Positions 3,197 through 48,689 of a DNA stretch of 64,000 nt are shown one piece after another; position 1 is the first letter of the stretch; every line of letters starts with the position of its first letter. The notes under the pieces were generated by a model. It did no database searches. It saw only the letters and a list, made by a program, of their open reading frames with translations, and was not told where the DNA came from. The stretch lies in sequence record MW384823.1. The stretch is one strand, 5' to 3'. Both the position numbers and the translations under genes were made by a program.

Positions 3197-4500
3197 TGGC
3201 CTATGGTCGCTTTCAACAGATTGTAAACTATCACATCGCGCAAGCGGCCGGATTGCCTCCCGTCGAGTACAACGCGGTGGTCACCGTGAAAGGGATTCCC
3301 CTGACGGTGATTCGTGTGCACTCCCTGATACACTCCGGGAACTTCTTCGAAGATATCACGACCCTCACTCACCTGACCTTGGTGGTGCCGTTCTCGCAGA
3401 TGCGTATTGCAACCGCGAATTCAGACGGGGACTTACGGGTACAGATTACTTTGCGTAGTGCCAACCGCTTGCTCGCCACGTATGCGTATCGCGGTATCGT
3501 GGTCAACAACCGTGACCCGGACATGGAAGCCCAAACCATGTTCTCCGGGCAGTCGGATGAAAAGGCGATTGCTTTCGTGACGTTTGAGCTGATGGACGAG
3601 TCTATCTGGTTTCTGCGTTTGCGCAACGTGAAAGTGCGTCACCAAGAAACGGATGCCCTAACGGTCGCCCGTGCCATCTTGGCAGACACGCTACCCGACT
3701 CGTCTAACGAGGGGGAGGTCTTATCACTCTCCTACGAGAAAGAAGAACAGCAGCTTTACCGTAACATCATTCTGCCGGATAGCACGACGTTTCTCGAAGT
3801 GTTTGACCAGCTGCAAGAACGCTACGGTATCTACAGCAAAGGGCTCGGTGTCTACCAGCATTTGCGCCGCTGGTATCTTTACCAGTTGTGGGATGAGGAG
3901 AAGTTCAACACGGCAACTGAGAAGGTGGTCATCTATAACTTGCCACGCGAGAAAGCCGCGCAGATAGACAAGACCATCCACATCACGCCGGGCGTCCTGT
4001 ACCTGATTACCGGTGGTGATACCACAACCATCGTGAAGACGGACGAGAATGCCCTGAACCAAGGGACAGGTTACCGTGTCGGTTCTATCCGCGCGCTGGA
4101 TAACCGTGCGTCATCGTTTACGCCGGGTGGTGTCAGTATGACCACGCCAGACAAATTCGTGTCGCAAGCCAACCCCGTGAATTACGCAGGGAAAGTGACG
4201 AACGCCCCGGTCGCCAAACAAGGCTTTACCGACAACGACAAACCGCTACGCGCAAAGCTTGCCCGTTCAACCGGCACCTTTACCAAAGTGACATGGAACC
4301 GCGCTGCTCATGGCCTCATTAAGCCGGGTATGGCGGTGAAATATGTTTATGCCAACGAATACGGCATTTACAGTCGCTACGGTACCATTGTTGGGGAAGT
4401 CTTCCAAGCCGGGCTGGACGGTGGCTCGATTGCGACCGCGAACCACAATACCCAATCGGAGCTTACCCTCTGGTTAGGGAAACAAAAAAATACAGCATAG
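3196..4500 (+). CDS. Virion structural protein, putative baseplate hub-like
   Basis: 434 aa beta-rich ORF with TAATG coupling. Size, position and motifs (LQERYGIYSKGLGVY; IKPGMAVKYVY) fit the phiKZ-like hub gene. Confidence 0.5.
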   Translation: MAYGRFQQIVNYHIAQAAGLPPVEYNAVVTVKGIPLTVIRVHSLIHSGNFFEDITTLTHLTLVVPFSQMRIATANSDGDLRVQITLRSANRLLATYAYRGIVVNNRDPDMEAQTMFSGQSDEKAIAFVTFELMDESIWFLRLRNVKVRHQETDALTVARAILADTLPDSSNEGEVLSLSYEKEEQQLYRNIILPDSTTFLEVFDQLQERYGIYSKGLGVYQHLRRWYLYQLWDEEKFNTATEKVVIYNLPREKAAQIDKTIHITPGVLYLITGGDTTTIVKTDENALNQGTGYRVGSIRALDNRASSFTPGGVSMTTPDKFVSQANPVNYAGKVTNAPVAKQGFTDNDKPLRAKLARSTGTFTKVTWNRAAHGLIKPGMAVKYVYANEYGIYSRYGTIVGEVFQAGLDGGSIATANHNTQSELTLWLGKQKNTA

Positions 4501-40625: not shown

Positions 40626-40662
40626 GTCCTACTCCTTCGGGAGTAGGACTGTTTTATTTTTT
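40626..40662 (+). terminator. Intrinsic terminator
   Basis: gtcctactcc-TTCG-ggagtaggac plus T-tract; 20-bp core identical to 12329-12348. Confidence 0.8.
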
Positions 40663-40673
40663 AAGGACTGTCG

Positions 40674-41201
40674 ATGACTACTTTTATTGCGGGCAAGAAC
40701 TACCTCGCCGCAGACCGTGCGGTAATGAAAAACCGAATGGTATTTGAAGATGCGAAGATTCGCACTATCAAAGGACGCATCGCGTACTTCTTTGGTTCAG
40801 AGCATCCCACGCCAGACGAACGCAAGTTGCTGGAAAAGAATATCTACGATTACATCTTCGGTAAGCAGAAAGCCCAAGAGGCAGCAGAGCTGTGGTTGCT
40901 GCACTTCATGGAAAGCAATACGCTGGTTGTGATGACCCGCAAGAAGACGCTGACCTTCAGTGCTATCTCACGGCTTGCTGCGTGGTCCCCGGAGCTGGGT
41001 GCTCCAACCCGCCATACAGGACTTACCGTAACCGAAGACCTGCTTGAAACACCTGTCGTTTATGGTTCGGGTGCAGAGTTGGCACGGGCAGGATGGGCAT
41101 GCGGATTACCGCCTGAGAACATCATTCTCATGGTACAGAAAATAGACCCGATGTCAGGGCATGGCTGCGATGTGGTTTACAGAGAGGACTTGCGAAAATG
41201 A
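40674..41201 (+). CDS. HslV/proteasome beta-subunit-like Ntn (Thr) peptidase
   Basis: Starts M-T-T with SD aagga 6 nt upstream; LAAD, DAKI, YGSGAELARA and IDPMSG reproduce the T1/D17/K33/GSG/D..SG pattern of HslV and proteasome beta subunits. Confidence 0.7.
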   Translation: MTTFIAGKNYLAADRAVMKNRMVFEDAKIRTIKGRIAYFFGSEHPTPDERKLLEKNIYDYIFGKQKAQEAAELWLLHFMESNTLVVMTRKKTLTFSAISRLAAWSPELGAPTRHTGLTVTEDLLETPVVYGSGAELARAGWACGLPPENIILMVQKIDPMSGHGCDVVYREDLRK

Positions 41202-43111: not shown

Positions 43112-43678
43112 ATGAAGTTCTGGGAGCGTTTTTGTCGCTTGTTTAAACATGTCCCTGAGGTGCAGACCGACGGTGACCGTTATACCCAAATCGTGCGTGA
43201 CTACTTCAATGCAGGTAATCACAACGTCGTGGAACTCTGTGATGCAATTGGCATGACACCACGCTCATTGTACTTTGCGGTTAACGACGACAACGTGCGT
43301 GCAAACATCCTGCCCCGCCTCCCTGAAAAGATGCGGATGGAATTGCGTGATGAACTGACCGCGCGAGCGTTCAGCCGTCAAGCTGTCTCGTTAATCCGTC
43401 CGAGCACCGCGAAGTACGATTTCGATAACCTCAATGAGCTGATGGCGCACGTACACGAATTGTTCGAAACGTACCGTCTCGAGCGTGGCGAGAAAGTGGA
43501 CCCCTCTATCAAGGCGTACATCCACTCCCTTACTCCGCGTACGGTACGTATCGCTTTCGTGGGTAGCGGTCACGAATTCAACGTCGGTATCATTGAAGGC
43601 ATCAACGTCGTTCAGCAAAACCTGCTTATGGTGAATTATGGAAAACTTAACGCCCGTGGAAATCGTCAATGTTTTTAA
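43112..43678 (+). CDS. Hypothetical protein with possible HTH
   Basis: VVELCDAIGMTPRSLYFAV resembles an HTH recognition helix; overlaps the HslU-like gene by 41 nt. Confidence 0.5.
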   Translation: MKFWERFCRLFKHVPEVQTDGDRYTQIVRDYFNAGNHNVVELCDAIGMTPRSLYFAVNDDNVRANILPRLPEKMRMELRDELTARAFSRQAVSLIRPSTAKYDFDNLNELMAHVHELFETYRLERGEKVDPSIKAYIHSLTPRTVRIAFVGSGHEFNVGIIEGINVVQQNLLMVNYGKLNARGNRQCF

Positions 43679-45374
43679 CCGTTATGTCCACGGTCAAGAA
43701 CTGGCGAAAAAGATGTTGGCGATTGCTCTGCGTAACCGCGTACGGGTAGCGTTGCTGCCCCTCGGTGAACGTAATAGCGTTCGCAAACAGAATCTGTTGT
43801 TACTGGGGCCAACTGGCTGCGGTAAAACGGCGCTGATGCGCGTACTGAAAACGCAATTTGGGTTACCTGTCTTAGAGCAGGACATGACCGGCTTTTCCGA
43901 GACGGGCTATGTAGGCCGTAATCTCATCACGTTGGGTTCGGACTTGCAAACTCTCACGCGCACGATCGCTTTGCCGGATTGGTACGTTGAGATGCGTACC
44001 GGTATGCAGCTTGAAAAAGACGAGCAGCGTTATACCCGTGAAGAACTCAAGCAGATCGAAGCAAGAGAGTACGAAGCGGAAAGCGCTGCGCGGCAAGCCG
44101 AATGGCAAGCTAAGCGCGATGCTAAAAAGCAACACGAGCAAACCCTGAAAGATTTAGGCGTGTTCCCGGATGACGATACCTACAATCACTATCGCATGGT
44201 CTACTACATGCGTGCGTTTTTGGTCGGCTATCACGCCATGAAGAACCTGCCCTACGATGTCATTGATTTCGCTGACATTGAAATGATTCAGGGGCAAAAA
44301 CTCATTGATGTCGCGAACAAAGTTGTTGGGCTTATCGAGAAGGTGGCGGGTAAACCCATCAACAGTATTGATGACCTCAATGAAGATTTGAGCGAGAACA
44401 CCGAAGAGATGATGGAGAACAATCCCGCGCTGATGGGTGAGTTCATGGGTCTGGTAGGCTACAACGAAGTGTTGGAAGTTATCATGACTCTCGGTGTTCA
44501 AATGCTCAACAGCAATCCGGTGGCAGCCTGCGTCTCATCGGCTGATTGGTACGACGTTGCCCATTCCTTCGAGCAAACCGAATCAGAAGACCTGCCGCCG
44601 GGTATTGCTTGGCGTCCGATGGAAGCGACGGAGTTTGCGCTCTACATCTGTGTGATGTTGGCGCGTGACCCGGAAGGTCTGGAAGAAGTCTTTGAAGATT
44701 GCGATGACTTCACCCGCTTTGCGGACGAGAAGTTGTGGAGTTATAAAGTGCCCGAGCCCGAAGTTGTGCAACCCAAAGGGAAGCGCAATGTGTTGTCGAA
44801 GAAAGATCTCGATAAGGTAGCGAACTGTAATGGGCGCGACTTCGTTGAGAACTTCGGGGTGGTGTTCTTAGATGAGTTTGACAAGCTCATTGAAACGGAT
44901 ACCACGGGTCGGACACACGTCTCCCGCAGCGGTGTGCAGCGCAGTCTGCTCAAGATGGTAGAAGGTGGTCTCTACGCTGGGATTGACACCACGAACATTC
45001 TGTTTGTGGCGGCCGGTTCTTTCGCAGAAGCCCCTGTGACCAAACTGATGCCGGAACTGCAAGGTCGTTTTACACTGCGTGCGGAACTGGAGCCACTTGA
45101 CAAAGAAGCGATGATTGCGATTTGTCGAATGGACAGCAGCGAGTTCCATGCGATGGTTCGTCTCCTGCGAATCGAAGGGGTGGTGGTCAATTACGACCTT
45201 GACACCTTTGAGTACATTGCAGAGAAGACCGTTGAAGCGAACTCGGTCGATGACCTCGGTGCACGTCGTTTAGCTGCGATCGTGGAAGCGTTATTCCAAG
45301 ACGCCTTGTACGAACCTAACAAGTATATCGAGAAAGGTTACGATCTGACCGGTAAAACCTTGAGGAAGAACTGA
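43638..45374 (+). CDS. hslU: HslU-like AAA+ ATPase (unfoldase)
   Basis: LTPVEIV, GQELAKKMLAIALRNR, GPTGCGKT, ETGYVG, VFLDEFDK, GVQRSLLKMVEG, TTNILFVAAGSF, PELQGRF, GARRL. Confidence 0.9.
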   Translation: MENLTPVEIVNVFNRYVHGQELAKKMLAIALRNRVRVALLPLGERNSVRKQNLLLLGPTGCGKTALMRVLKTQFGLPVLEQDMTGFSETGYVGRNLITLGSDLQTLTRTIALPDWYVEMRTGMQLEKDEQRYTREELKQIEAREYEAESAARQAEWQAKRDAKKQHEQTLKDLGVFPDDDTYNHYRMVYYMRAFLVGYHAMKNLPYDVIDFADIEMIQGQKLIDVANKVVGLIEKVAGKPINSIDDLNEDLSENTEEMMENNPALMGEFMGLVGYNEVLEVIMTLGVQMLNSNPVAACVSSADWYDVAHSFEQTESEDLPPGIAWRPMEATEFALYICVMLARDPEGLEEVFEDCDDFTRFADEKLWSYKVPEPEVVQPKGKRNVLSKKDLDKVANCNGRDFVENFGVVFLDEFDKLIETDTTGRTHVSRSGVQRSLLKMVEGGLYAGIDTTNILFVAAGSFAEAPVTKLMPELQGRFTLRAELEPLDKEAMIAICRMDSSEFHAMVRLLRIEGVVVNYDLDTFEYIAEKTVEANSVDDLGARRLAAIVEALFQDALYEPNKYIEKGYDLTGKTLRKN

Positions 45375-45571
45375 TGCACATGCTCATCGTGTCAATCGTG
45401 GCCATCTTTTTAATTCTCAACTTACTGGGCGTCGGTATCGGTAAATTGTCAGTCCGTTATAATTGGTCTTTCTGGGCGATGCTGACGGTAGCGTTGTTCT
45501 TCGGCGGTCTCATCGGGAACGTCTACTTCAGCTACATCATCCGACCCCTTTACCAGAATCTCGGGAGTTAA
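45374..45571 (+). CDS. Small two-TM membrane protein
   Basis: 65 aa; two hydrophobic runs; TGATG coupling to hslU. Confidence 0.7.
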   Translation: MHMLIVSIVAIFLILNLLGVGIGKLSVRYNWSFWAMLTVALFFGGLIGNVYFSYIIRPLYQNLGS

Positions 45572-45574
45572 CTC

Positions 45575-46303
45575 GTGGACGATATTCAGTACCCCATGCG
45601 GGTAGAGCGTGTACAGAAATCCTACTCACAAGCCGGTAAGACGGTAAGTGAAGGAAGTATACATGCGTCAGGTCAGGTGTTGTGTCTGCCGAAGTCTGCA
45701 TTTGTAGAGGGTGCGGACTGGCAGCAGATTTTCCGTCGTTGGCTCAACTGTTCTGCCCGCTGTGAAACCGCGCCGGTTCGCCACGCAAATCATCAGTACC
45801 CTGAGTCGCTTTTCCGAACCTCGAAGATTCATGAGGAGAACGTGTGCGCGACTCTATTGGGTGGCAGTATGGATGTGAACGGTGAGTACGTCACGCTTAC
45901 CACCAACGTGGTGCCATACGGCCCTTATGGGGATAAGTTGGCGACGTACATGCGTGAGCAGAAAGAGTTGATTATCGTTCCGCGTTTTATCAAAGACAAG
46001 GACGATAAAATCACCGGTGTGCCCGCATGGGATTTGTTGTTACCATCGGGTTGGGATGTCGTTCCGTACGTGTACAATGACGTACAGGACGAAGTCTTTG
46101 TCGGTGAGCTGGCGTACTTCAAAGAGAAATGCAAAGCCAACGGTGTCAGTTGGTCAATGCACTATTCTGACTCGGACGACCTCTGGCATTTCGTGCTAGA
46201 GTCATACCACTCCATCGTCTGCTTTGAAGGCGAGAAGAAAAAGTTATGCGATGCGTTGGAAGACGCGACGGCGTATGTTGACAGTTTAGATAACAATGGA
46301 TAA
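45575..46303 (+). CDS. Prohead-protease (T4 gp21/phiKZ gp175)-fold protein lacking catalytic His/Ser, with C-terminal extension
   Basis: RCETAP, KIHEENVCATL, VPYGPYGDKLATYM, IVPRF, AWDLL align with gp21 GELNHP, GPGDKLAANI, GVSSRG, VDAV. Confidence 0.6.
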   Translation: MDDIQYPMRVERVQKSYSQAGKTVSEGSIHASGQVLCLPKSAFVEGADWQQIFRRWLNCSARCETAPVRHANHQYPESLFRTSKIHEENVCATLLGGSMDVNGEYVTLTTNVVPYGPYGDKLATYMREQKELIIVPRFIKDKDDKITGVPAWDLLLPSGWDVVPYVYNDVQDEVFVGELAYFKEKCKANGVSWSMHYSDSDDLWHFVLESYHSIVCFEGEKKKLCDALEDATAYVDSLDNNG

Positions 46304-46781
46304 GAACATGGATAAGAAGACTGAACGTAATCTGCTTGAAATCACGGGCAAGGGCGAAGACAACAACGGCAAGTTTTATTCCGTCGTGTTGTTAGACCAG
46401 TCCAAGATTAACGCTAATGGTCGCCAGTATAACGGTGACCTTGCGCATCTGGTGCGTGGTATCAAGCGTATGCCGCGGTTGTTCTGTGAAGTTGACCCGT
46501 ATCACGATTACCGCTTCCAGTTCCCGGTAACCGATGATCGTTCTGTTTCTGGGCCGTGTACGGTCGACATGAAAAACGTCTGTGCCTCTATCGAGAATAT
46601 CCGTCACGATAAGATGAACCAGCGTGTATCGGCTGAGCTGCGTCCGTGGGGCCCGCAGGCTTCGATGGTGCGTGATCTGTTGGACGGGGTCAACCAGAAC
46701 GTGACCTTCGGGATGCGGGCGTTGGCAACCCCTGACGGAAAGATTGACAAAGTCATCACATGGGACTTATTACCAGAATGA
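46296..46781 (+). CDS. Prohead-protease (T4 gp21/phiKZ gp175)-fold protein lacking catalytic His/Ser
   Basis: INANGRQY, FCEVDP, TVDMKNVCASI, RPWGPQ..MVRDLL, NVTFGMRA, ITWDLLPE. Confidence 0.65.
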   Translation: MDKNMDKKTERNLLEITGKGEDNNGKFYSVVLLDQSKINANGRQYNGDLAHLVRGIKRMPRLFCEVDPYHDYRFQFPVTDDRSVSGPCTVDMKNVCASIENIRHDKMNQRVSAELRPWGPQASMVRDLLDGVNQNVTFGMRALATPDGKIDKVITWDLLPE

Positions 46782-46978
46782 ATATCGTCGAATTGTTCTA
46801 TTGGTTTGTCATGGTGTTAAGCGGGTATTTCCTTATCGTGTTTGCAATTGACATGGTTAAGGATTTACTCAAGGGCGACCTGATGGGTGTGCTCGTTTTG
46901 ATCGTGTTTGCTATCATCGTCTGGAATGTCCACCGTTGGGCATTCGTAAGACTGGTGCCGATGCAGACACTGTTCTAA
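46778..46978 (+). CDS. Small two-TM membrane protein
   Basis: 66 aa from ATG 46778 (ATGA coupling); two hydrophobic runs. Confidence 0.65.
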   Translation: MNIVELFYWFVMVLSGYFLIVFAIDMVKDLLKGDLMGVLVLIVFAIIVWNVHRWAFVRLVPMQTLF

Positions 46979-47084: not shown

Positions 47085-47261
47085 ATGGATAAAATTTATA
47101 TCGTTACAGCAATCCTCTTCACAATCGCTTGCTTACTGAGCTGGCGTGTCGCATCAAACCAAAAGCGTCGTAAGTGCCCACCGGGTGCTATCGCGTTTGG
47201 TGTTCAAGCCTGTGTCTATGGTTTTGTGGCCATCTACACCGGTGCGAAGTATTTCTTCTAG
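47085..47261 (+). CDS. Small two-TM early membrane protein (58 aa), not in ORF track
   Basis: Hand-translated MDKIYIVTAILFTIACLLSWRVASNQKRRKCPPGAIAFGVQACVYGFVAIYTGAKYFF*; SD aaggag; flanked by promoter motif and terminator. Confidence 0.75.
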   Translation: MDKIYIVTAILFTIACLLSWRVASNQKRRKCPPGAIAFGVQACVYGFVAIYTGAKYFF

Positions 47262-47270
47262 CAGTAAAAA

Positions 47271-47300
47271 AGGGGCACGGAAGTGTCCTTTTTCTTTTTT
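47271..47300 (+). terminator. Intrinsic terminator
   Basis: aggggcac-GGAA-gtgtcctt plus T-tract. Confidence 0.7.
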
Positions 47301-47320: not shown

Positions 47321-48385
47321 ATGCCACGTCTCTTAGCGTTCACCGGTGGAATCGATTCTACATGGGTGTTGCAGAAATTAATTCAACAACCGTCTGCTGA
47401 TGGCGGTGAAGTGATTCATCCGGTTTACATGGATTTCTATCAAGGTTCTCCGGCGGCCATTGTCGAGTTCCTACTCGGGAGTGAAATCGCGCTGCGGCTG
47501 TTAAAGCGCAACAAAGACAATTATAAAGAGCCGCTGGAATGGCGCTCACCCCCACTTCAAATCTTCACCAGCTGTATTATCGGCCGTTCAAGCGGAAATG
47601 AAAGTCGCCTGATTCAACAGGGTAACACCGTGCTGGGTTTGGCACACCTGATGAATGCGGTGCAAGCTCGACATCCGGGGTCTACCGCATTAACCGGTTG
47701 GAACAAAGCCGACTTCATTGAAAACAGTGCGCTGCAAGGCGAGTGGTCGGAAGAAGACTACCTGCGTCTGAAGAAACTCTACAGTGAAATGATGTTCTTC
47801 CAAGACCATCACTACCGCTGCTCTCCATTGCTCACCCCGGCGTGGGATATGGAGAAGAAAGACATGTGGGATGCGCTCCCGGCTGATGTGCAAGAACTGA
47901 TCACTGTGTGTTCAACCTACATGTTTAAGATTTACCATGTTAAGTCCGAGAACGCGCTGTACATCTCCTGTAACCCACAACACTTCGGTAAGTCTGTGCG
48001 GTATCTGGCCCGTGGGATTAACCTCACAGCAGCATGGCGTATCGCGATTGACGACGAGTTCCATCGCCGACTCAATTCGGACAATGTCCCGAGTAACCAC
48101 TTTGCTGGAAGCTTCCCAAGTGAGCTGCTGGCGTCATCTGAAACGAAGCACCGCCCGACGCTGCGTATGCGTTCCGATGACCGTAACCTGCAAATCGAAG
48201 CCTACAGCATCGATGAGTGGAAAACGAAGTTTGACCATGTAGAAGAGATGTTAAGGGTGGAACGTGAACGAGAACAAGCCGAGTACCACGCCCAGCGAGA
48301 AAAAGAGAAAGCTGAAAATCCGGACGGTGCAAATCGCGAAGTGGCGAAAGGCGAAGTCGCTGCATCCAGCGATACCGTTGATTGA
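47321..48385 (+). CDS. QueC-like PP-loop ATP pyrophosphatase (diverged)
   Basis: N-terminal LLAFTGGIDST PP-loop, VIHPVYMDFYQ, LLTPAWDMEKKDMW..LP...ITVCS. The canonical QueC Cys cluster is incomplete. Confidence 0.6.
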   Translation: MPRLLAFTGGIDSTWVLQKLIQQPSADGGEVIHPVYMDFYQGSPAAIVEFLLGSEIALRLLKRNKDNYKEPLEWRSPPLQIFTSCIIGRSSGNESRLIQQGNTVLGLAHLMNAVQARHPGSTALTGWNKADFIENSALQGEWSEEDYLRLKKLYSEMMFFQDHHYRCSPLLTPAWDMEKKDMWDALPADVQELITVCSTYMFKIYHVKSENALYISCNPQHFGKSVRYLARGINLTAAWRIAIDDEFHRRLNSDNVPSNHFAGSFPSELLASSETKHRPTLRMRSDDRNLQIEAYSIDEWKTKFDHVEEMLRVEREREQAEYHAQREKEKAENPDGANREVAKGEVAASSDTVD

Positions 48386-48689
48386 TGTCACTGTTAAATC
48401 GGGCATCAAAGCCTTAGCCCCAACGTGGGACTTTCTGATGGAGTACAAGAACTCTGATAAAGGTCCCGAGGCGGAAGACGCCTACACGAAAAAATATAAA
48501 AGCAGAATCCAACAGCTCAATCAGGAAAACCCCGATGTGATGTTGGAACTGCTGTATCAGGACGAAATCATCCTGATGTGTTATTGCCCAGCCGGAAAGT
48601 TCTGTCACCGGCTTTTATTAGTTGATGAGTTCAAAGCCTTAGGCGATGAACATAATGTCGAAGTAATCTACGAAGGAGAAATAGAATGA
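48264..48689 (+). CDS. DUF488/YeaO-like protein
   Basis: DVTVKSG..ALAPTW, AYTKKY, ILMCYCPAGKFCHRLLL; start uncertain (GTG 48264). Confidence 0.55.
   Translation: MNENKPSTTPSEKKRKLKIRTVQIAKWRKAKSLHPAIPLIDVTVKSGIKALAPTWDFLMEYKNSDKGPEAEDAYTKKYKSRIQQLNQENPDVMLELLYQDEIILMCYCPAGKFCHRLLLVDEFKALGDEHNVEVIYEGEIE

Follow-up and report, generated by a model that had tools for sequence, protein, structure and literature searches.

Genome setting and gene layout

The analysed window, a stretch of 64,000 nucleotides, belongs to the genome of Erwinia phage pEa_SNUABM_43 (MW384823.1, genus Machinavirus, 241,904 bp), and its coordinates equal the record coordinates minus 62,000. The segment 43600–47400 (3.8 kb), which spans both genes considered here, is 100% identical to MW384823.1. 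Two adjacent genes, hereafter ORF1 and ORF2, were found at positions 45575–46303 and 46296/46308–46781, in agreement with the initial annotation. In GenBank both already carry the label 'putative prohead core protein protease', and the gene upstream of them is labelled 'putative HslU-like ATP-dependent protease'. The locus is represented by the following features:

40626–40649, + strand: hairpin resembling a terminator (10-bp stem, then a T run), located in the intergenic gap ahead of the HslV-like gene; may mark the upstream end of a transcription block
43638–45374, + strand: HslU-like AAA+ ATPase, 578 aa; context gene, upstream of the membrane ORF at 45374
45374–45571, + strand: small membrane protein of 65 aa with two helices; start codon overlapping the stop codon of the HslU-like gene (ATGA); part of the variable island
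45575–46303, + strand: ORF1 (QQO90616), 242 aa, putative pseudo-protease of the S80/gp21 fold, gp117 lineage; assigned by PHROG, hhalign, structural model, tree and dN/dS
46308–46781, + strand: ORF2 (QQO90617), 157 aa, putative truncated S80 pseudo-protease; assigned by Pfam, PHROG, hhalign, structural model and dN/dS
46778–46978, + strand: small membrane protein of 66 aa with two helices; its ORF overlaps the last nucleotides of ORF2
47268–47293, + strand: hairpin resembling a terminator (11-bp stem, then a T run), past the final small membrane ORF; may mark the downstream end of the block

ORF1 starts with GTG, and the sequence GGGAG is located 7 nt upstream of it. An earlier in-frame ATG is available to ORF2 at position 46296, a start that its homologs do not use. 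The membrane ORF at 45374 and ORF1 are separated by 3 nt, and ORF1 and ORF2 by 4 nt.

The surrounding block is composed of accessory genes and genes of nucleotide metabolism, so that the pair does lie among accessory genes and not among head genes, as had been proposed. The real protease of the phage is encoded at 221.6 kb of the record, outside the window and ~113 kb from the pair. This protein of 268 aa matches PF20034 with E 4e-86 and contains the motifs GEEDHP, FSLRA and FDWV, with the triad H/S/D.

Homology and predicted fold

The products of ORF1 and ORF2 are 25% identical over 102 aa (BLASTP, E 8e-5), a likeness that is weak yet above chance, and each of them also matches the PHROG of the other; the resemblance between the two neighbours, first noticed from the sequence alone, is therefore real. 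ORF2 matches the Pfam family Peptidase_S80 (PF20034) with 30.2 bits at a cut-off of 23.4, over profile positions 88–175 of 229 only, and the family phrog_7478, 'head maturation protease', with 4.5e-55. The best family for ORF1 is phrog_24315 (2.8e-64), with a weaker match to phrog_7478 (5.4e-16); no Pfam match was found for ORF1, and its link to S80 comes solely through PHROG and hhalign. In hhalign comparisons with the true S80 proteases (n = 15), the ORF2 family was recovered with a probability of 99.3 (E 1e-20) and the ORF1 family with a probability of 91.7 (E 8e-7).

The ORF2 model, built with AlphaFold2 on 75 relatives, has a pLDDT of 88. Its sole clear Foldseek match is T4 gp21 (PDB 5JBL), with a probability of 1.0, and in the VIA comparison with 5JBL a Z of 12.4 was obtained at an rmsd of 2.8 A over 132 of the 157 residues. 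The next structural match, the VZV protease, has a Z of 5.8, and herpesvirus proteases give Z values of 4–6. The ORF1 model is weaker (pLDDT 71), with the same core topology predicted at residues 9–155 and 5JBL as the top match (probability 0.99, TM 0.43 by target). In this model, residues ~173–240 of ORF1 form an extra C-terminal domain of predicted alpha-beta3-alpha topology. The Atlas search with this domain returned only unnamed viral clusters. The domain bears no clear likeness to the protease tail, nor does it resemble the 112-aa product of the gene upstream of the PCH45 paralog.

Accordingly, the scaffold of T4 gp21 and phiKZ gp175, which the initial annotation had proposed for both ORFs from their motifs, is recovered by the Pfam, PHROG and hhalign matches and by models topped by 5JBL. 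A gp21-type fold is predicted for both proteins by profile and structure comparison alike, and the notion that neither possesses such a fold finds no support.

The search of PDB sequences with the profile of the S80 paralogs gave nothing significant. Its best match, at a non-significant E of 0.47, was gp48, the tail-tube junction protein of the T4 baseplate, in an alignment covering PxGP ... R ... TWDL. The match brings to mind the common origin of procapsid proteases and tail-tube proteins reportedly proposed by Fokine and Rossmann in 2016.

Active-site residues

Active sites were compared in MAFFT alignments of 15 true proteases and ~50 short relatives, from which the true protease of pEa_SNUABM_43 itself was left out. 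The triad positions are occupied in ORF2 by P64 (46497–46499), G135 (46710–46712) and D153 (46764–46766), and in ORF1 by a gap or Ala, V135 (45977–45979) and D153 (46031–46033); R137 is kept in both. The Ser position of ORF1 is occupied by Val-Pro. Two residues past the canonical His position, within the lineage-specific insert DPYHDYRF, the close ORF2 family has an invariant His66. Unlike MAFFT (P64; gap or Ala), hhalign sets the catalytic His opposite His66 in ORF2 and His70 in ORF1. Whether His counts as lost therefore depends on the alignment; the loss of the Ser nucleophile in both ORFs, which is independent of the alignment, is surer. Of the earlier claim that His and Ser are replaced and Asp is kept in both proteins, the parts concerning Ser (G135, V135) and Asp (D153) stand, while the part concerning His stands with MAFFT only, hhalign pairing His66 and His70 with the catalytic residue.

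Both ORFs also lack the second His (NVCAH), which is near-invariant in the true proteases. Both have kept the residues that frame the active-site cleft: the Glu, the PxGP loop, the SxR Arg and the Asp. ORF2 stops 4 residues past the Asp motif and consequently has no protease C-terminal tail; this tail is also missing from ORF1, where an unrelated folded domain is found instead. The C-terminal region of SPN3US gp245 is removed by self-cleavage and is inferred to direct the enzyme into the prohead (PMC5694885; PMC7411985). The small ORF downstream, at 46778, was considered as the lost protease tail and was ruled out, its product being a two-helix membrane protein.

With phiKZ gp175 and SPN3US gp245 (MEROPS S80, PF20034), ORF1 and ORF2 have in common the fold and the motifs E-x-G-x-P, NVC, PxGP, F-x-x-R and W/F-D, but differ from them in lacking the His, the Ser, the second His and the self-cleaved tail and in lying outside the head module. 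T4 gp21 (MEROPS S77, 5JBL) and the herpesvirus assemblin are the best structural matches, at a sequence identity of 14–16%, but their catalytic Ser and His are missing in the ORFs.

Distribution of the short paralogs

An exhaustive profile search yielded 65 cluster representatives, and 66 sequences were included in the comparison of residue columns. His, Ser and Asp are present in all proteins of S80 architecture with lengths of 200–272 aa (15 of 15 long proteases). Among the short paralogs (126–173 aa, ~50 clusters) none was found to have both His and Ser, and the Ser position in these ~50 clusters is occupied by Gly in 63%, by Ala in 20% and by Ser in 14%. Arg137 and Asp153 are 100% conserved, D153 being invariant in all 66 sequences compared. 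Four residues, namely, H64, H94 (NVCAH), S135 and N131, located 4 residues before the Ser, are invariant or near-invariant in the true proteases and unconstrained in the paralogs; columns E61, P65, R82, C92, P113, G115, P116, F134, R137 and D153 are still conserved in the paralogs. As read from the aligned columns, this contrast is the signature of a pseudoenzyme that has kept its cleft.

The same alignments bear on the possibility that the paralogs are active peptidases with non-canonical residues, for example, His66 of ORF2 together with the Cys before the conserved Glu. Nearly all members of the close ORF2 family have this Cys, which is also common among the other short paralogs; the invariant His66 is placed opposite the catalytic His by hhalign, and an ORF1-like protein of Salmonella phage SPAsTU retains the canonical H/S/D. 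However, no alternative nucleophile is conserved family-wide, the Ser position being mostly Gly or Ala; the second near-invariant His (NVCAH) is lost in all paralogs, and Val-Pro stands at the Ser position of ORF1. Peptidase activity of this kind is considered very improbable.

The SPAsTU protein in question (MH221129.1, L008:4953–5438; 161 aa), a paralog of the ORF1 lineage, contains full H56/S124/D142 in the motifs CEYGHP, LSARK and TWDLV and lacks the second conserved His; judging by these motifs, it may be a still-active member of the family or a snapshot of loss in progress.

An unrelated metagenomic jumbo-phage contig (L016), one of five distant contexts considered below, also carries tandem short S80 paralogs, encoded at 3607–3990 and 4001–4387 (127 and 128 aa, 27% identical), with M/A/D and C/S/D at the triad positions and with a dCTP deaminase gene and a DHHA1-like gene as flanks. 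The 257-aa metagenomic protein P0037 is a fusion, the first 99 residues of which are 34% identical (E 1e-18) to a 112-aa protein of the Serratia phage PCH45, and the C-terminal half of which is an S80 paralog. In PCH45 the gene for the 112-aa protein (L006:4657–4995) is located directly upstream of the gene for the paralog. This fusion hints at a partner protein for the paralog in that lineage.

Relation to SPN3US gp117 and naming of the paralogs

Ali et al. 2017 (Front Microbiol, PMC5694885) described gp117 of SPN3US as a 'cryptic protease', a truncated paralog of the prohead protease; two copies were reported in Machina, Caitlin and ChrisDB, S126 and D144 of gp117 were aligned with the catalytic Ser and Asp, with no aligned His, and prohead-protease paralogs were called unprecedented. 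S126 and D144 were confirmed in the SPN3US sequence. Gp117 goes unmentioned in later papers on SPN3US and has no row in the mass-spectrometry supplement on the SPN3US virion, and the paralogs reported in 2017 are not known to have been followed up since. As the gp117 family was published in 2017, this kind of gene is already known. The present analysis adds the absence of Ser from both Machinavirus copies, the division into two lineages, the family census, the selection estimates and the variability of the cassette.

Similar to ORF1 and ORF2, gp117 is a diverged truncated S80 paralog located away from head genes, with the Asp kept and the His not aligned; its family occurs in SPN3US and in Erwinia jumbo phages. 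Gp117 keeps Ser (S126) at the nucleophile position, whereas Val is found there in ORF1 and Gly in ORF2. Gp117 and ORF1 belong to one clade (support 99), but ORF1 has an extra C-terminal domain of 85 aa; ORF2 belongs to a second, far more widespread lineage, which is lacking in SPN3US.

In RefSeq (NC_042056, NC_031127, NC_031126, NC_031120 and others) the dead paralogs are labelled 'head maturation protease'. This label and the label 'virion structural protein', given to the paralogs in some GenBank records, are probably wrong. The latter was considered as a sign of location in the capsid and was rejected, since it derives from a Pfam match and not from mass spectrometry. The name 'head maturation protease' is misleading and can mask the real protease in automated annotation.

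Phylogeny, selection and the variable island

In the tree, the true proteases form one clade with an SH-aLRT support of 92. ORF1 is grouped with SPN3US gp117, Stratton gp135 and SPAsTU ORF 41 (SH-aLRT 99), and ORF2 with Stratton gp136 and SPAsTU ORF 38 (SH-aLRT 83). Since the clades are separate, ORF1 and ORF2 represent two lineages that are both old, and the tandem did not arise by recent duplication. Conservation of the ORF2 lineage is very wide across jumbo phages of different hosts.

Nei–Gojobori dN/dS values among Machinavirus genomes are 0.03–0.08 for ORF1, 0.03–0.06 for ORF2 and 0.05–0.11 for the HslU-like gene, comparisons to Machina being saturated. Strong purifying selection indicates that ORF1 and ORF2 are functional genes and work as non-enzymes rather than decay. 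The term pseudo-proteases, applied to the two proteins from the outset, is thus upheld by the predicted gp21/S80 fold, the loss of the Ser nucleophile in both and the dN/dS values of 0.03–0.08, and the identity of ORF1 and ORF2 as S80-derived pseudo-proteases is highly probable. The prohead-protease paralogs constitute a large, old and selected family, from which the catalytic residues have been systematically lost.

The segment 45374–46978, comprising a membrane ORF, ORF1, ORF2 and a second membrane ORF, is an island of divergence. In comparison with Machina, ORF1 is 45% and ORF2 54% identical, while the flanking genes are 90–97% identical. ORF1 is missing in Huxley, Parshik and pSal-SNUABM-04, the ORF2 of which is 90–98% identical. 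The membrane ORF at 45374 is absent from Machina and is 31% identical in Huxley; the membrane ORF at 46778 is 64–71% identical in relatives and absent from Huxley. Such a distribution of identities suggests exchange of a cassette by recombination, and it fits a host-interaction role or a dispensable accessory role better than a tight tie to the conserved protease. No such paralog was found in phiKZ, so the paralog is not needed for head maturation of the S80 type in general.

The island is also a ground for regarding the two proteins as host-interaction or counter-defence proteins, acting as a decoy for a protease-sensing bacterial system or as a blocker of a host protease. Divergence within a block of 90–97% conservation and the presence or absence of ORF1 within one genus, with purifying selection on each allele nonetheless, are the usual mark of genes of phage–host conflict. 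On the other hand, neither protein has homology to any known anti-defence protein, we know of no defence system that senses S80 proteases, and the wide occurrence of the ORF2 lineage across hosts suggests a role internal to the phage. As an account of the pair as a whole, counter-defence is unlikely.

The HslU-like neighbour and the putative transcription block

Within 40–49 kb of the window, the only terminator-like hairpins with long stems are those at 40626–40649 and 47268–47293, both intergenic, the total number of hairpins in this region being not above that in shuffled sequences. Between the two hairpins lie the HslV-like and HslU-like genes, ORF1, ORF2 and three small membrane ORFs. Tight packing of the genes together with the bracketing hairpins makes co-transcription of ORF1 and ORF2 with the HslU-like gene, supposed in the initial annotation, plausible.

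For the annotated HslV-like gene (40674–41201), no support was obtained from Pfam or PDB sequence searches; its product starts with MTTF, so it is possibly an N-terminal Thr hydrolase.

The HslU-like gene adjoins the paralogs in Machinavirus (pEa_SNUABM_43 and Machina) and in SPAsTU, where the ATPase gene is located between the two paralogs. It is absent from Stratton (Erskinevirus), which keeps both paralogs, and from PCH45, which has one; SPN3US keeps gp117 alone, with no HslU-like gene at this locus. In five distant jumbo-phage contexts, the paralog is found among genes for ribonucleotide reductase, dCTP deaminase, RecJ/DHH, QueC-like and DUF488 proteins and never among head genes, and it has no AAA+ neighbour there. 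Since the paralogs are kept without the HslU-like gene, they are not dependent on the ATPase, and a functional link between the ORF1/ORF2 pair and the HslU-like ATPase appears weak. Prediction of the complex of the HslU-like protein with ORF1 and ORF2 gave a score of 0.00, which, obtained without controls, counts neither for nor against binding.

These data were weighed with respect to a role of ORF1 and ORF2 as adaptors or regulators of the HslU-like unfoldase, the idea put first in the initial annotation, in which the dead protease would capture a target and pass it on to the ATPase encoded just upstream. The tight packing on one strand, with an ATGA overlap followed by gaps of 3–4 nt, the enclosure of the entire block between two strong terminator-like hairpins, and the proximity of the HslU-like gene and the paralogs in two genera with differing gene orders (Machinavirus and SPAsTU) are in line with it. 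The two paralogs of Stratton and the single ones of PCH45 and, as regards its locus, SPN3US occur without an HslU-like gene, however, and no AAA+ neighbour accompanies the paralog in the five distant contexts, so that the adaptor role is judged distinctly unlikely.

The neighbours in distant jumbo phages (ribonucleotide reductase, dCTP deaminase, RecJ/DHH, QueC-like and DUF488 proteins) are in line with a neofunctionalised scaffold, in which the fold alone would be reused for a task other than proteolysis, such as one in the metabolism of nucleotides or DNA. QueC-like and DUF488 genes adjoin the pair here too, and extra domains have been gained by ORF1, P0037 and a further family member, P0064. 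Yet the conserved residues (E61, R137, D153 and PxGP) line the former active site and do not form a new surface, and synteny among related jumbo phages is possibly inherited and not functional. Neofunctionalisation of this type is regarded as unlikely.

Proposed function

The preferred reading is that ORF1 and ORF2 encode dead S80 prohead-protease paralogs of the gp117 type, kept by selection, which act outside the capsid as non-cutting binders (probability about 0.55). The mechanism of a binding regulator is considerably less certain than the identity of the proteins. S80 proteases cleave on the C-terminal side of the Glu in A-X-E or S/A/G-X-E (PMC5694885). The Arg, Asp and Glu that ORF1 and ORF2 have kept would still form a cleft able to bind a segment with a Glu, for example, that of the A-X-E maturation sites; alternatively, the proteins would pair with the protease zymogen. 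In the cytoplasm, they would shield the substrates or the zymogen, or would delay cleavage until assembly of the prohead, and this role would be independent of the adjacent HslU-like ATPase. Binding of AXE sites or of the protease without cutting, one of the roles put forward in the initial annotation, would agree with the fact that the dead active site is still surrounded by its Glu, Arg and Asp; the variability of the cassette pulls in the opposite direction, towards interaction with the host.

A dead paralog encoded beside the active enzyme is represented by cFLIP and caspase-8. The fold of cFLIP is unrelated to that of ORF1 and ORF2, and pairing of the ORFs with the active protease would be an analogy to this case.

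A more general proposal extends the preferred reading to the short S80 pseudo-proteases as a whole, which would be widespread regulators of jumbo phages, the dead cleft holding Glu sites or the zymogen and timing maturation; the rapidly exchanged ORF1/ORF2 cassette of the Machina type would also act as a decoy for host systems by which the protease is detected. In this combined form the proposal has a low probability. The role of the paralogs, if found, would represent a new layer of control in the assembly of giant-phage capsids or in phage–host conflict.

Neighbouring genes

Three hydrophobic proteins of 58–66 aa, apparently with two membrane helices each, are encoded at 45374–45571, 46778–46978 and 47085–47261, interleaved with the HslU-like and pseudo-protease genes; the ORF at 45374–45571 is translationally coupled to the HslU-like gene through the ATGA overlap. 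In SPN3US, gp117 is flanked by the membrane-anchored gp116 and by gp118, which has a signal peptide.

Downstream of the pseudo-protease genes, the region 47321–48385 encodes a 354-aa protein with an ExsB/QueC domain according to the annotation of pSal-SNUABM-04, no Pfam match being found for it here, and the region 48438–48689 encodes a DUF488-N3a protein. The trio of a faint QueC-like protein, an S80 paralog and a DUF488-N3a protein is also present in SPN3US (gp117–gp120) and in a metagenomic contig of 243 kb from a distant jumbo phage (L019), and could represent a module of DNA or nucleotide modification.
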